Of a stretch of DNA of 64,000 bases, positions 1,280-63,071 are shown one piece after another (the first letter of the stretch is position 1; each line of letters begins with the position of its first letter). The notes under the pieces were generated by a model that was given only the letters and a program-made list of their open reading frames with translations, ran no database searches and was not told the origin of the DNA. Both the position numbers and the translations under genes were made by a program. The DNA comes from Piromyces finnis finn (lineage: Eukaryota; Fungi; Neocallimastigomycota), in contig MCFH01000003.1 in NCBI GenBank assembly GCA_002104945.1, positions 496,001 through 560,000 of the forward strand, written 5' to 3'.

Positions 1280-4200
1280 TTTTATTTTATTTAATTATAT
1301 AAAATAACGCTTTTAAAATATATAGCTTTTTAATTTAAAATCTTTATTTATTAATTAAAATGGTTAATTTAGTTAGAATAAATGTAGTTTTTAAATTATT
1401 TATTTAATTGTTATTCTTATTATTTATATTATAAAACTTACTTAAGTATATGTACGTTTATAATAGTTTTAAAATAATATCTTTTTCAATTTTAATAAAT
1501 ATTCTAATAAATATTAATAAATATTTATATATCTAGTCTTTTAAATTTTACTGTATTTTATTAAATTAGTTTTTTCCTTAATATTTACAATAAAAAAGGG
1601 ATAATGAACCTAGTAAAATATATAATATATATTAAAGAAAAGGAAAATTAATTAAAAACAGTTATATTATTATTCTATTATTATTATTCAATTTTTTTTC
1701 TCAATATCATGTTTTTATTATAAAATAATATATAAAAAAAGAAAAAATTTTTTTTTTTTTTTTTTTACAAATGAATAATATTATCAATTGTTATCTATAT
1801 TTTAATAATAACTTTTCTAAAAAACTTGACTTTTTTGATATTACTATTTTTATATTATTTCTATTCATTAATTATTAAAAAATAAATACTAATATCATAG
1901 TTTCTAACTTTTTTACTATAAAATATGAAAATAAAAAAGGTTGATAAAATATATTATTGTTTATCTATTTTTTTATCTATTTTCTTTAAATTCACTTTTT
2001 AAGAATTACCTTTCTTAAATGTTGTATTCTAAAAAGTTACTTTTTATATTTTTTATTTTCTTTGTTTTTTAGTAATATATATATAGATAAAAGTCAATAT
2101 ATATATATATACTACATAAAAATAAACAATAATAACATATTATAAAAAAAAAAAAGAGTTAGTTATTTGTTTTTGATATATTATATCATATATTAACTAT
2201 TAAAGTTCTTTTCATATTAAATATTTATATCAATTTTTTTCTTTTTTTTTCTGCAGTAATAAAAAAGAAATACATAATGGATAATTATCAAAAGTTGTAA
2301 AACTAATGTACTACTAATAATAACACCTATTACTAAATATTATACTGTTTATTTTCTATTTTTTTATTTATTGTTCTTTTGCTATCTTTATTATTTAACC
2401 TCTTAAAAATAATTCTTTATATAAAATTTTATAGTTAAAAGAAATATATTATTTATATGTTTTAATAGTTTAATTACTTTAATGCTTGTTTCTTAAAAGT
2501 ATTTATTAATAAATAAATATTGTTGTATTTCTATACTATTATATATATTACTTTTATTTATTAAATATTTAAAAAAAAAGTAGAAGTAAAGTAAAGAAAA
2601 GAAAAAAAAAAATTTTTAAAAAATCTTTTTATATATTTTTATTAGTAATTTTAATTAATTATTTTATTCCATTTTTACTAAAGGTTAATTATAAATTAAT
2701 ATATTGAAGTATAAAATAAATCATATATTATTTAATATATTTCATAATTACGTTTCATCCATTATACAAAAGTAAATAAGAAAATTAACATCATCTAAAA
2801 ATTAATATATTTAATATATAAAATTTAATATAATAACATATATTCATTTACATTTATATTAAAATAGCAATAAAAATTAATGATGAAGTAATCATTATAC
2901 TAGTGAAAAAAAAAAGTCTAGAAAGTAAATAAAGTGGGTTTTTATCAAAGTCTCTATATAATTCATGATATTTATAATCAATATGTAATAGGCTTGTATA
3001 TCATAATAGAATTACTTTTATTAATCTAATGTTATACTTTTCTTTTTTTAAAAGAAATTAACTTTTATGAAATAGCAAAGTAAAAGTATGGCATATATGA
3101 AAGAAATGCCTTTATTTATTGGTCTTTTATTGAATATTGAATATAAAATATTTTTTCATTATGCTTTTATTGAAATATTATAAAAACAAATATCTATTCT
3201 AATTTATTATTAATACTTTTTATAATAATGCATGCTAACAAAAGTATCATTAACATAATAATTTTTAATATCTTTTAATATTATACTCTCATTTTTTTTT
3301 TACTTATGCCATTATTATAATGATATATACTTTTAATTAAACTTTTTTTGTCATTCATTCATCATCATAACACTAATAATAGTAATGATGACGATGACAT
3401 TATTTTCATTTCCTAACATTTTACCTATCTGCTTCTATCTACTTTACCTAAAAAATTTTTAAGGTTCATAATAAAATTATACTTTTTATATTTATTAAGA
3501 TTTATCGACCATTACATAAAATAATAATAAATTAGGTTTATTAAAAAATTAATTTTAAATTAATATAATATTACAAAATAAAATAAGCTTTATAAAGTTT
3601 TTCAAAACTTCGATTCAAAACAAAAGCAACAGTAAATAAATAAATAAATAAATAATAAATAAATAATAAAATAGAAATGTTTATTTATTATGATCCATTT
3701 TAACAAAATGAATTCAACATATTTATTTTTTTTTTGTATGAATGATATCAAAAAGTATTCAACATTAAATGTGTTCAATTATATATTGCTTTTAATAATT
3801 TGAAACATTTTTTTTCTGAAATAATATTGTTATTTAATAAGGTAGAAGTTATAAATTTTTAGATACACACATTTTACTTTTTAATTATTAATTAATAAAA
3901 AAATTTTATTTATTTAATATAAATATTCCTGTATTACCCATATAAATAGAGCTCTTTTTTTAAAAAAAAAAATAAAAAATAAAAAAACAAACTAAATAAT
4001 ATAAATATGGTTTATTTTGTTTTAGAATAAATGGAAAAATTGACATCAAAAACATGGTTATATAATAAAATATTTCATATCAAAAAGGAAAGAAGTTTTT
4101 TTTAGTAGATATAATAAATGCTTATTTTCATAAAATATAAAACTATGCATAATTATTTCATCATTGATTTTCTTTTTTAAAACTGGTCTATTTTCATAGG

Positions 4201-58027: not shown

Positions 58028-58119
58028 TTATTTACTTTGTTCTTTTTTCTTCTTTCTAGTTGAAGTACTTTTATAACTTCTTTTTCTATTATTACTATTA
58101 CTACTACTAATGCTATTAC

Positions 58120-58150
<31 letters not shown>

Positions 58151-58196
58151 GTTATTATTGTTATTATTGTTATTATTATTATTATTATTGTTATTA

Positions 58197-58275
<79 letters not shown>

Positions 58276-60534
58276 AGTTGTTGTTGTTGTTGCTGCTGTT
58301 GCTGCTGTTATTGTTATTATATATATAGCTATTAGAGTATTGGGATATAGAATTTGACCCTACATTATCATCCTTATGATGAATTAGGGAAAGGCTCTCA
58401 ATTGAAAAACTATTGTTGTTTCTTTTGGATTCTTTTTTTATTGTTATTTTTTTCTGTACATTTTCTATTGAATTGGTTGTATTATAATAATTATTTGTAT
58501 TATTATTGTTGGTAATGGAGGTAGACTCCTTATTGTAATAATTATTAGTATTATCTTGAATATCTTTATTATTGTTATTATTATTTATATTGTTACTATT
58601 ATTTATACTGTTGGTATTATTATTTATAGGATTACTATTATTTATACTGTTAGTATTATTGTTATTATTATTTTGATTTTGATTTTGATTTTGATAGGTA
58701 TTATATTTTATATTTTCAAGTTCATCTTCTTCACTTAATTCTACTTCTATTTCATCTTTTTCGGATTCCGTTTCTATTTCTTGTTTTATTCTTTTAACTG
58801 ATTCGTTTATTGTTGGAGAAGAATTACTTTCAATTTTTCGTTTTTCCAATTTCATACAATCTTGATTATTATTATTATCATTAGTATCATTATTACTATC
58901 ATTATTACTATCATTATTAATATCATTATTAATATCATTATTATTATTATGGTTATTATCATTACGATTGTTATTATTATGATTATTATAGGAAGAAGAA
59001 ATGGTTGATAAAGGTATTGAATTTGATATGATATAATTATACGACCTATAATAAATTAAAATATTTTATTGAAATTATTTTAATTTAATTTTGCCTTTAT
59101 TTTTTTTTTTTACTTTAATATTTAGAGAATATTACCATGAATTATATCCAGGAATAGATCCCATATTTTCGAAATAATTACAAAAATCAATAATATTTTG
59201 ACCCCTAAAACGTAAAAAAAAATAAAATAAAATAAAATAAAATAAAATAGGAAATATAATATTAATTTATATTTTATCAATTCTATGAAATTACTTTTAA
59301 TTTTGATTTATCATTATTAAAACTTATTAATACTATTATTGATGATATATGTTAATATGATTGATTAGTATTTAGGTAAAGTTTCAAAATTTACATATAA
59401 ATGAGCATATGAGAAGAATCCTGTATAACTTTTTCTCTTCCTGTTGGTGTAGCAAATGGTACTTTTTTATTAAATATACAATGGGGATATTTTAGGGTGT
59501 CTAGAAACCAGCTCTTTCCAAAATCTGTTTTTAATAGAATGAAACAAGAGGAAATTTCATTACGTTGAAAACGATCTTGAGCAGATTTAAACCATTGTTC
59601 TTGAAAATTTCCATTTTTACTAATTTTATCGGTATGATTTGGAGGATGAAGCCATATATCTCCATACCATGGTTGCTGTAATCCATTCATTTGCTCTGTG
59701 AAAAAGGTTTGTGCTATTTTATTCTCATGTAAATCATTGGCAAATTCACAAGAAGCCGGATCTAAATCAAAACAATTTTTTCTTATTACTTTTTTTGCTG
59801 CTAGAATAATATTTTTGGGGGTGTATAGTTCATTATTTAAATTGGTGAAGGCTACGCCTGTTTCATATTTAATGGTCATCGCAACAACATTTTCTTCAGT
59901 AATATTTTGTCCACTATCACAAACTTGTTTCCATATATATCGTCGTACTTCGGCTGGAAATTTATGTAGACTTCTAATATGCGATATATTCACTGGTATA
60001 GGTAATGTATTATCTTCAACAATTGATTCATAGACACTCCTGTTGTTGTTGTTATTATCCAACATTCAAATAGGTTTTTATATATTATATATAATTTTCA
60101 ATATTCATTTATATTTATTATAGACAAAATAAGAATATAAAATGGTTTTAACAATTATTATTATTATTTTTTCTTTTGTATTTTGTTAAAATTATACTTA
60201 TTATAAATATATATATATATATTATTCTATCTTTTTTTTTTTTTTTTTACTAACGCTGAACATAAATAAGTATTTGTAGTTCTCCTACTAAACATAAATT
60301 TATTTTTTGCATATGTATAAATGGATTTTTCAGGTTCTAATTACCAATTATTTTAAATAATTTATTTTTTTTTAATAAAAAATAAAATTGTTTTATTGAA
60401 TTACTTGTTTTTAATTTTATAAATGATTGCTTACTGTACAAATGATATTCATCAATTTCACGTAATGCAGCAGCTTAAAACAAATAAATAATAAATATAA
60501 AATAGATATAGAGTTATACGTTAAATAATTTTAT

Positions 60535-60567
<33 letters not shown>

Positions 60568-60931
60568 CATTATCTTAGTTATTATATTATTATAAATGAT
60601 TATTTATAAAATTTAAATTTAAAAAAAAAAAAAAAAAAGATAATAGTTATTTAGAGTATTAAATTTAAATTGAAAATTAAAATAACTTATATATATATTA
60701 TTTATAATATAGGATAATAGTCAATGTACATTTTATAATTTTACAATTTTTATTATTTATATATATATATATACAAAAGGTTAATTCCATTTTAAAATAT
60801 TAAAAAAAGTAATTTTAATTACCAACTAAAAAAAACTTTCCAGAACCCAAATGTTCACTAATTATTGCTTCCAGTTCCATTAAACGAGTTTTATTAACAT
60901 CTTCTTCAATCCAATTTCTTTTTTCATCCAT
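58028..60931 (-). CDS. ParB-type HTH fused to a phage-Dam-like N6-adenine methyltransferase domain plus an Asn-rich tail; 653 aa, 6 exons (60931-60823, 60473-60435, 60336-60255, 60039-59395, 59204-59136, 59045-58028)
   Basis: Exon lengths sum to 1962 nt, in frame, with all GT-AG introns. N-terminus: LMELEAII..FFLVAAALREIDEYHLY..SIYTYAKNKFMFSRRTTNTYLCSA. MTase: FDLDPAS (59751-59771), FFTEQMNGLQQPWYGDIWLHPPN, FILLKTDFGKSWF, MLIYMGQNIIDFCNYF. Confidence 0.85.
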
Positions 60932-61583
60932 ACTTTTATTATTATTTAAATATTATATTATTTATTTTTTTAATTAAATATATAATAAAAAGGACTTTAT
61001 AGCATTGCTTTAAATAAATTATTACTGATATAAGTATATTTATTTATCTTATTTTCTATCTTATTATTTATTCTATTTGAAAAAAAAAAAATAAAATAAA
61101 ATAAAAAAAAGAATTATTTATCTATTTATTAAATTCAAAGTTAAATAACTATTTTAATTTATTCATCTGTTAAAAAAAAAAAAGAAAGAAAAATAAAAAA
61201 ACTATTTTTTTATTTATTAAAATAAAAGGATTTTAACCTTCTTTCCTCATCGACATAAAGTACATATCTTTAATAAATATAATAAATATTTATTACACTT
61301 TCAAAACTCAATTATATTACATATATTTTTACACTAAAACTTTGTTAAAAAAAAAACACCATTTTTCTTTTTTAAATTTTTTTATTTATTTTTTTTTACA
61401 TTTACATTATTTCATTTTACAATTTTTTTAATATAAATATTTTATTTATATATTCATGGCTTTACGTATTTAATAGACTTTTTCACCTTACCTAATAAAT
61501 TATTAATATAAAAATTATAAGTATATTGTAAACCAATTTTATAATTTTTAATAATTAATATGTTAAATATAACATTTTAAAAA

Positions 61584-61663
61584 CCGTCAGTAGGTGTGGA
61601 TTATTTGTCTCATTGGGGAGCGACCCCCTCTGAAGTAGCAAATATTTTTTAAAACATCACTCT
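61584..61663 (-). ncRNA. Box C/D snoRNA, U24/SNORD24-like, copy 1
   Basis: Minus strand reads: box C GTGATGT (61660-61654), D' guide ATATTTGCTACT plus CAGA, hairpin GGGG-TCGCT-CCCC, C'-like AATGAGA, box D CTGA (61590-61587). The D' guide is complementary to the conserved LSU rRNA segment GUAGUAGCAAAUAUUC. ATATTTGCTACTTCAGA and AATGAGACA match yeast U24 as I recall it. Confidence 0.85.
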
Positions 61664-61857
61664 TATTTTTAAAATAATATATTTTACTTTAAAAAATCAG
61701 ATATATTTACCTTATGTTTTATTGCAAATTTTTTACTTTCTTTTTTTTTTTTTTTGATAAATAGACTAAATATCAATCTATAAATTTTAAAAAATAATTT
61801 TAGTTTTATATTCACTTTATTGTTAAAATATAATTATTCTTTTAATATTTTAAAAAT

Positions 61858-61939
61858 TCGTCAGTAGGTGTGGATTATTTGTCTCATTGGGGAGCGACCC
61901 CCTCTGAAGTAGCAAATATTTTTTTAAACATCACTCTGA
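61858..61939 (-). ncRNA. Box C/D snoRNA, U24/SNORD24-like, copy 2
   Basis: Near-identical copy 274 bp away: box C at 61934-61928, box D at 61864-61861. Confidence 0.85.
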
Positions 61940-63071
61940 TTTCTAAAATATTTTTTTGATCAATTTTATTTCTTTTTCATTAATTCTTTTATATTTACCT
62001 TTTTAAAAATAATTATTTCCTTTTTACTATTTATATTCTTAATTATTCTTAAAACAACTTTTCTTTTACTCTTTTCTGTTTTTATAATTTTTTTTTTTTT
62101 TAAATGGAATGTTTAATTTTTTTTTAAAAAATTAATAATTAAATATAAAAATAATGAGAGGAAATGATTGGCTAATTCAACAAACAATTAATCATTTTTT
62201 CTGGATCAAAAATAAATAAATTTATTACAATTAATGATTTATGTAGATGGATTGTACATAAATGTAAAAATTCAATATAATAAATATTTTTTTTAAAAAA
62301 AGACATACTTTTTGGTGTGTGTGTTAAAATTGTTAATAAATAGATAGATAGATTTTGATTTAATAAAAACTAATAATGGGATTTTCTTTGAAGTATATCC
62401 ATTTATTTTTTAAATAGTGTTATAAATTTGATCTATTTGTATATTTCCTCTATATTGATATTTATCTTCTTTTATTTTGTTAATAATTTTCAATAGCATT
62501 TTAAAGAAATTAATAAAAAATTTGTATTTTTTTAAATAATTTAATATAAAAATATAAAATATATTTTTTAACCTCTATATCATAAAAATGATTTTAACTT
62601 TTTTGTTATTGTTATTTTTTTATATTTTTTTTATTAATGTTTTTATTTTATTTTTTTTTTTGTTATTGTTTTTAATTTGACTTTTTTTTTTTGTTATTGT
62701 TGTTGTTGTTAGTGTTGTTATTAATTTTTATCAAAAAGGAATAATTAATCTAAATTAATATAAAAGAAAGACAAACTTTAAATTATAAAAAATTTCAATA
62801 AACTTTAAAAACTATTTTCATCAATTTTTCACAGCAGTAAAACCTTAAAAATCATTATTCCAAAAAGTTTTATTACACTATTTTCATTCAAACTTACACT
62901 TTTATTTTTTAATATTAGTGAACAATGATAGTAGTGTTTTAATAAAATTATTGTTTTCTTATGAATTAAATTATATAATAAATACATATATATAACCAAC
63001 AATAAAAAAGTTTAAGCAAACAAAAAAATAATAATAATAATAATATTATTCCAAACTTATAATTTACAATA

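Follow-up and report, generated by a model that had tools for sequence, protein, structure and literature searches.

What is a DNA methyltransferase homologue with a non-canonical catalytic motif doing in a fungus? The question is raised by a 64,000-nucleotide stretch of the Piromyces finnis genome (contig MCFH01000003.1, positions 496,001 to 560,000; referred to as the window), in which a gene on the minus strand at 58028-60931 encodes a protein of 653 amino acids with an N-terminal helix-turn-helix (HTH) domain, a Dam-like methyltransferase domain and a low-complexity tail. An earlier note, made from the letters of the window, had described the product as a ParB-HTH Dam homologue with a dead or altered catalytic motif and had proposed that it either partners an active paralogue in the manner of METTL14 or acts as a 6mA/ApT reader, as a component of a fungal N6-methyladenine (6mA) system outside the MT-A70 family. 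Among fungi, the early-diverging lineages serve as the chief model for DNA 6mA. The explanation that we favour, with fair though far from complete confidence, is that the protein is a non-catalytic pseudo-methyltransferase which acts as a nuclear, sequence-specific DNA-binding factor and derives from a domesticated prophage HTH-Dam protein.

The evidence that weighs most comes from motif IV, which in the window protein reads HPPN in place of NPP[YF] (minus strand, 59637-59648; WLHPPN, 59637-59654). A column census was taken from a 117-row alignment (A5) with 39 fungal and 73 non-fungal rows, position 4 of the motif being scored in 37 of the fungal rows. At position 1, all 73 non-fungal rows carried Asn; the 39 fungal rows carried Ser (28), Phe (8), His (2) or Ala (1), and never Asn. 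At position 4, Tyr (59) or Phe (9) was found in 68 of the 73 non-fungal rows, and 14 residue types were found among the fungal rows, with Leu the most frequent (12) and an aromatic residue in 3/37. The entropy of this position in fungi was 3.3 bits, and just 9 of the 170 domain columns varied more. The decay of motif IV is common to the whole zoosporic-fungal clade, HPPN being its local form, and the domain is probably inactive for adenine-N6 methylation. The idea of a dead or altered motif thus stood in that the motif is non-canonical and the domain probably inactive, but the decay is not peculiar to this gene, as it runs through all 39 fungal rows.

Other columns of the alignment were far less permissive. 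Motif I, FDLDPAS, the presumed S-adenosylmethionine-binding loop, is intact at 59751-59771 as the earlier note had read it, and residues invariant in both groups include D169 and P170 of this motif, N177, A185, G195, W200, G202, the two prolines of motif IV, Y288 and G290. Invariant in fungi only were E135, G137, F140, E191, F224, H260, C297, an IPG motif and the TPTGREK loop (59430-59450), the last of which is variable in prokaryotic relatives. In the HTH core (FSFSRRTTNTYLCSASVYES...ISHIRSLHK) the fungal sequences hardly vary, whereas those of non-fungal relatives do, and the same holds for the FSRRTTNTY stretch (FSRRTTNTYL at 60263-60292 in the window, within exon 3), which is near-invariant in the fungal clade and variable in prokaryotic relatives. 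Conversely, W147 of the NEWYTP motif, T149, G164 and R266 are relaxed or replaced in fungi though close to fixed outside them.

A maximum-likelihood tree was built by a quick method from 30 fungal and 46 non-fungal rows over 315 columns. The fungal rows were monophyletic (Shimodaira-Hasegawa-like approximate likelihood ratio test (SH-aLRT) support 99), with a stem of 1.07 changes per site and short internal branches; they were nested among relatives bearing NPPY, and the three Neocallimastigomycota rows formed one clade (SH-aLRT 100). Such a pattern is the mark of a functional shift on the stem, after which purifying selection was strong but ignored the two catalytic positions.

The distribution of the family agrees with a single fungal group. 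Orthologues were found in at least 20 named chytrids, in Paraphysoderma, which we take to be a blastoclad, and in three Neocallimastigomycota sequences. Those among the Chytridiomycota recovered by a word-indexed protein search were from Spizellomyces (SPPG_01607), Powellomyces, Fimicolochytrium, Geranomyces, Rhizophlyctis, Borealophlyctis, Batrachochytrium dendrobatidis, B. salamandrivorans, Homolaphlyctis, Globomyces, Boothiomyces, Cladochytrium, Dinochytrium, Phlyctochytrium and Blyttiomyces; those of Chytridium lagenaria and Polyrhizophydium came from an exhaustive HMMER search. Identity to the window protein was 57-62% over about 210 amino acids in the best-matching chytrids, and 87% and 85% in Neocallimastigomycota-like sequences of a second and a third species, P0030 (HPPN) and P0001 (HPPC), respectively. 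In the HMMER search, 8325 relatives were collected at E up to 1e-3, many of them 300-360 amino acids long and matching both the HTH and the Dam parts of the profile, and a sharp gap separated the fungal group (at least 223 bits) from all others (at most 190 bits). No member from Mucoromycota, Zoopagomycota or Dikarya was present among the named matches of the protein searches, and a tblastn search of the 64-kb window gave no paralogue. The window gene is the Neocallimastigomycota orthologue of a single-copy zoosporic-fungal family. In Rhizophlyctis rosea, two paralogues, P0047 (955 amino acids) and P0062 (605 amino acids), match profile positions 16-142 (E about 1e-40) without a Dam domain, which suggests that the HTH is a self-sufficient functional unit. 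No paper was found in the literature on SPPG_01607, BATDEDRAFT_85509 or any other orthologue.

What the two domains are was addressed by profiles and structure models, and the ParB-HTH plus Dam-like architecture proposed for this gene held up. Against Pfam, exon 4 matched the Dam family PF05869 at threshold (28.6 bits versus a cut-off of 28.1, E 1.4e-6), with orthologues P0003, P0005 and P0009 scoring under the cut-off; PHROG 111, 'DNA methyltransferase', was matched with E 1.6e-15, and the score against NCBIfam TIGR01712 (24.5 bits) was far under the equivalog cut-off of 97.05. Genes annotated 'DNA methyltransferase' in Vibrio phages share 37% identity with the Dam part. A profile search over all Protein Data Bank (PDB) sequences gave no match. 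Structures were then compared with an AlphaFold model of the core of P0003 (Blyttiomyces, 316 amino acids; 61% identical to the window protein in exon 4), computed from a 117-sequence alignment, which reached a predicted local distance difference test score (pLDDT) of 95.8 and a predicted template modelling score (pTM) of 0.85. Foldseek on this model found type I HsdM enzymes as well as PCIF1, the methyltransferase of cap adenosine. In a VIA-align comparison with 48,161 chains, residues 139-313 matched PCIF1 (Z 10.4), E. coli Dam (8.6), M.TaqI (8.5), T4 Dam (8.3), CamA (8.1) and DpnM (7.9). In the orthologue model the domain thus has the Rossmann-type fold of N6-adenine methyltransferases, in line with its assignment to group 2 by Iyer, Zhang and Aravind (2016; PMC4738411).

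The N-terminal 138 residues of P0003 were modelled separately (pLDDT 96.2) and matched, nearly over their full length, Spo0J (Z 9.0; 106 residues, 2.6 Å), ParB-parS (8.4), KorB (6.8 and 6.6) and SopB (6.2), below which only partial matches of about 65 residues were found. Because all near-full-length matches except one, Raf1, were DNA-binding domains of the ParB superfamily, we accepted the modelled domain as a ParB-type HTH, an assignment by structure and not by sequence profile. It resembles the helical HTH domains of ParB/Spo0J, KorB, SopB and Noc in size and topology; unlike these proteins, the window protein has no N-terminal cytidine triphosphate (CTP)-binding ParB domain and begins directly at the HTH.

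Full-length HTH-Dam genes were also found in bacterial bins assigned to Chloroflexota, Arenicellales, Burkholderiaceae, Planctomycetota, Bacteroidetes, Treponema and Selenomonadaceae, and one in a Thermoplasmatota bin; by itself, the Dam part has a much wider distribution, which takes in cyanobacteria. HTH and Dam together are of prokaryotic origin. In one locus of a Burkholderiaceae bin (L004, 296-6231), an HNH endonuclease gene is followed by two unknown open reading frames (ORFs), an HTH-Dam gene of 301 amino acids at 2906-3811, a small ORF and the genes of the small and large terminase subunits; this locus is a prophage packaging module. Prokaryotic relatives in ParB-terminase phage loci are also given in the main text of Iyer et al. 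(PMC4738411). A tblastn search with the HTH domain against annotated phages gave no match. Outside the fungi, the closest relatives (P0046, P0073 and others) are metagenomic proteins, as is most of the non-fungal set, and they point to no particular donor lineage.

The ParB-HTH plus Dam architecture in chytrids was already described computationally in 2016, and the 'chlorophyte-type Dam' ParB-HTH family of that study, with an N-terminal ParB-type HTH and a group-2 (M.EcoKI/M.TaqI-like) Dam domain, is the closest known likeness; chytrid and prokaryotic members of it, but no chlorophyte ones, were identified in the present searches. The main text of that paper also gives the [DNSH]PP[YFW] rule for motif IV with the roles of its first and last residues, treats as inactive METTL14, the DIRS1 domain and the second clade-4 domain, and lists the ParB-HTH Dam family, with no such remark, among candidate N6-adenine methyltransferases; it makes no mention of a clade-wide decay (PMC4738411). 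In contrast to the family as described there, every fungal member in our alignment is without the Asn and nearly all are without the aromatic residue of motif IV, and the family is extended here to Neocallimastigomycota and a blastoclad. With PF05869 and TIGR01712 the window protein shares the fold, the DLDPAS form of motif I, the WxG-x-WL-xPP context and the C-terminal Y-x-G...F...F...G helix, but its gene is eukaryotic and intron-bearing, with HPPN for NPPY and a 338-amino acid tail.

On the pseudo-methyltransferase reading, the following course may be proposed. The ancestor would have been a prophage or bacterial two-domain protein, with a ParB/KorB-type HTH followed by a PF05869 Dam-type methyltransferase. 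On the fungal stem, constraint on the active site would have been lost, the Asn that hydrogen-bonds the target amino group giving way to Ser, His, Phe or Ala and the aromatic residue stacking against the flipped adenine to a freely varying position, with the cofactor-binding motif, the fold and the HTH kept under very strong purifying selection. The HTH, with its invariant recognition region, would bind a conserved DNA target; the Dam-like domain may have been kept as a second nucleic-acid-binding module or as one that still binds or senses S-adenosylmethionine. Basic KRKR-type patches are found in extensions beside the core, N-terminal in most chytrids and C-terminal in the window protein, and may serve nuclear import; the species-specific low-complexity tail would mediate interactions or activation. 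Mitochondrial transcription factor B (TFB2M/Mtf1) offers a precedent for an adenine methyltransferase fold that was kept for non-catalytic nucleic-acid binding and transcription, although it belongs to another, unrelated methyltransferase family (KsgA/Dim1) and the analogy is one of logic alone.

More tentatively, the whole history might be one of ancient domestication, in which a packaging-associated prophage HTH-Dam gene was captured before the chytrid/blastoclad split and its product, once catalysis was lost, turned into a sequence-specific nuclear regulator in flagellated fungi; the pseudo-methyltransferase would still bind S-adenosylmethionine and thereby link regulation to the supply of methyl donor, and a small transcription-factor family, the HTH-only paralogues, would have sprung from this gene. 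If the favoured explanation is right, the family would be a clean and very conserved case of a phage DNA-modification enzyme that became, in a eukaryote, a pseudoenzyme equipped with a DNA-binding domain, and the idea could be tested in the transformable chytrid Spizellomyces punctatus, whose orthologue is SPPG_01607.

Several observations weigh against this explanation. As to the HTH, no ParB, KorB or HTH model of Pfam or PHROG matched the N-terminal domain at E up to 1; in the structural comparison its top match was not a ParB protein but the alpha-domain of Raf1, a Rubisco accumulation factor/chaperone (Z 10.5 and 10.2), and the ParB-type Z scores are moderate for a helical domain. Foldseek with the HTH domain alone gave nothing at E < 0.001, ParB and Raf1 rows appearing at E 0.1-4. 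Moreover, the models describe the P0003 core and not the window protein itself. As to the loss of catalysis, an aromatic residue is present at position 4 in Chytridium lagenaria (SPPY), P0036 (SPPF) and Paraphysoderma (FPPF), which are scattered on the tree; the perfect retention of motif I and both prolines would also fit an altered chemistry; and the fungal-specific invariant residues F140, F166, F224 and H260 (P0003 numbering) could replace the lost Tyr. Separately from this weighing, the rank of the Raf1 alpha-domain above ParB/Spo0J suggests that the Raf1 alpha-domain itself has the ParB-type HTH fold.

Could the protein instead belong to the 6mA pathway, as the earlier note had it? A role as a non-catalytic partner of an active methyltransferase, following the logic of METTL14 and MTA9, or as a 6mA/ApT reader has in its favour the degenerate motif with a kept fold, which parallels inactive METTL14 (main text of PMC4738411) and the non-active Mta9 partner (PMC11258239), and the host does carry 6mA. 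However, the window protein is outside the MT-A70 clade and, unlike METTL14 and the MTA9 of ciliates and fungi, has its own sequence-specific HTH, and no paralogue of the same family with NPPY was found among the named fungal matches, in searches limited by length and word matching, leaving the METTL14-like claim without its active partner. In addition, Lax et al. (2024; PMC11258239) reported that an MT-A70 complex makes symmetric 6mA in early fungi, which already explains that mark, and that most chytrids have less than 0.3% 6mA and Neocallimastigomycota and Mucoromycota 0.8-3.8%. We compared these levels with the presence of the gene. All of Chytridium lagenaria, Cladochytrium replicatum, Powellomyces hirtus, Fimicolochytrium jonesii and Piromyces finnis carry an orthologue, and their 6mA levels were not detected (ND), 0.21%, 1.43%, 1.84% and 1.68%, respectively (Supplementary Table 1 of PMC11258239). 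Since orthologue-bearing species range from ND to 1.84%, the gene is not sufficient for high 6mA, and since high-6mA Mucoromycota gave no orthologue in the searches, it is not necessary either. Orthologue presence does not track 6mA levels, which speaks against a component of a non-MT-A70 6mA system. Nor does a reader of flipped bases suit the data, as it would be expected to keep or gain aromatics and not to lose the stacking one. We therefore hold a role as partner or reader to be unlikely. Because both catalytic residues of motif IV appear lost clade-wide and presence does not follow 6mA, the ParB-HTH Dam family drops off the list of likely 6mA writers, on which the MT-A70 complex and the clade-4 enzyme remain as candidates.

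A methyltransferase that is still active at a non-canonical site, by use of another stacking residue or with a different target atom or substrate (N4 of cytosine or a conserved RNA, for instance), is another possibility, to which we give rather low weight. In its favour are the invariance of motif I and the PP pair, that of the fold and of numerous core residues, and the very strong conservation of the Dam-like domain with its fungal-specific TPTGREK and YPHC motifs, which suggests a precise ligand; F140, F224 and H260 might compensate for the lost Tyr, and the Ser found at position 1 in most chytrids is a hallmark of N4-cytosine enzymes in the main text of Iyer et al. (PMC4738411). On the other hand, position 1 can also be Phe or Ala, which are incapable of hydrogen-bonding an amino group, and position 4 takes 14 residue types. 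To our knowledge, no characterised amino-methyltransferase of the superfamily lacks the aromatic residue; METTL14, which is inactive, reads EPPL at motif IV.

All of this presupposes a correct gene model, which was assembled in AT-rich surroundings (14-31% G+C per 2-kb bin of the window and about 18% near the gene). Exon borders were first picked by eye on the reverse complement; the resulting six exons have GT-AG at every border and a coding total of 1962 nt, equal to 653 codons and a stop, with no internal stops. Exon 1 (60823-60931, 109 nt) contains the ATG and the first HTH helix (MDEKRNW...LGSGKFFLV), exon 2 (60435-60473, 39 nt) encodes AALREIDEYHLY, and exon 3 (60255-60336, 82 nt) encodes the HTH core PEKSIYTYAKNKFMFSRRTTNTYLCS, with 89-93% identity to chytrid orthologues. 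Exon 4 (59395-60039, 645 nt), to which the PF05869 and PHROG 111 matches belong, encodes the HTH domain's second half and the bulk of the Dam-like domain, and exon 5 (59136-59204, 69 nt) the methyltransferase C-terminal helix (GQNIIDFCNYFENMGSIPGYNS), which the C-termini of orthologues match. Exon 6 (58028-59045, 1018 nt including the stop) encodes the low-complexity tail of 338 amino acids, 42% of which are Asn, with the basic C-terminal end RKRSYKSTSTRKKKKEQSK at 58031-58087; the tail is unconserved, those of orthologues spanning 7 to 519 amino acids. The HTH is encoded by exons 1-3 and the start of exon 4. The spliceable gene, its micro-exons of 109, 39 and 82 nt that build the HTH, and its poly-Asn tail with a basic end are as the earlier note had read them, and the six-frame ORF list, as it had also pointed out, catches just the two large pieces.

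Transcript evidence came from three studies, in the form of contigs of the public runs X1-X4. Between 40 and 48% of sampled words of the locus were present in these runs, which is about the exon share, and because the contigs carry the spliced form, the runs derive from RNA. A single contig, X3 record 12, links exons 1 to 6. The joints 60473>60823 and 60336>60435, seen in three runs, and 59043>59134, seen in four, all have CT..AC ends, corresponding to GT..AG on the minus strand. Exon 5 is further represented by contig pieces at 59134-59203 in X2, X3 and X4, and exon 6 by X1 record 1, which reaches 58351. X1 record 1 also runs unbroken over 60823-61059, setting the minimum extent of the 5' untranslated leader at 60932-61059. 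With the chytrid proteins P0003 and P0005 as tblastn queries, exons 1, 2, 3, 4 and 5 were matched colinearly, the micro-exons with 70-93% identity. The gene is real and expressed. Over 59394-60039 the contigs of X1, X3 and X4 showed zero differing letters; the letters at HPPN being identical in these three runs, the motif is therefore no sequencing error. In one X2 contig (depth 6), an extra T stands after 59775, where it would cause a frameshift immediately before motif I; absent from the other three runs, it probably reflects an assembly error in a stretch of T or else a rare allele.

The remaining reading, a decaying relic in the form of a pseudogene or a domesticated DIRS retrotransposon fragment, can draw on the PF05869-like domain of fungal DIRS elements, held inactive in the main text of Iyer et al. 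(PMC4738411), but was rejected as scarcely credible in view of the intact 653-codon frame, the five correctly spliced introns and the transcripts in three studies, the roughly 60% identity across fungal phyla, the sharing of both HTH and Dam with bacterial two-domain proteins, and a neighbourhood with only short ORFs and no reverse-transcriptase or recombinase relative.

Some contig features around the gene were set aside. A 13-letter insert seen in two runs between 60952 and 61837 is not in the window and was taken as an assembly chimera in low-complexity sequence, and the long skips 57903>60361, 59117>62078 and 60386>62080, which have sides of only 21 letters, were taken as de Bruijn chimeras of A/T-rich low complexity and not as splicing. 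Upstream of the gene on the minus strand, at 61590-61690 and 61870-61950, there are two near-identical C/D-box-like units (gagtgatgt...ctacttcagagggggtcgctccccaatgagac...ctga); both are spanned by transcript contigs, and an intron-like joint, 61489>61572, was observed in one run.

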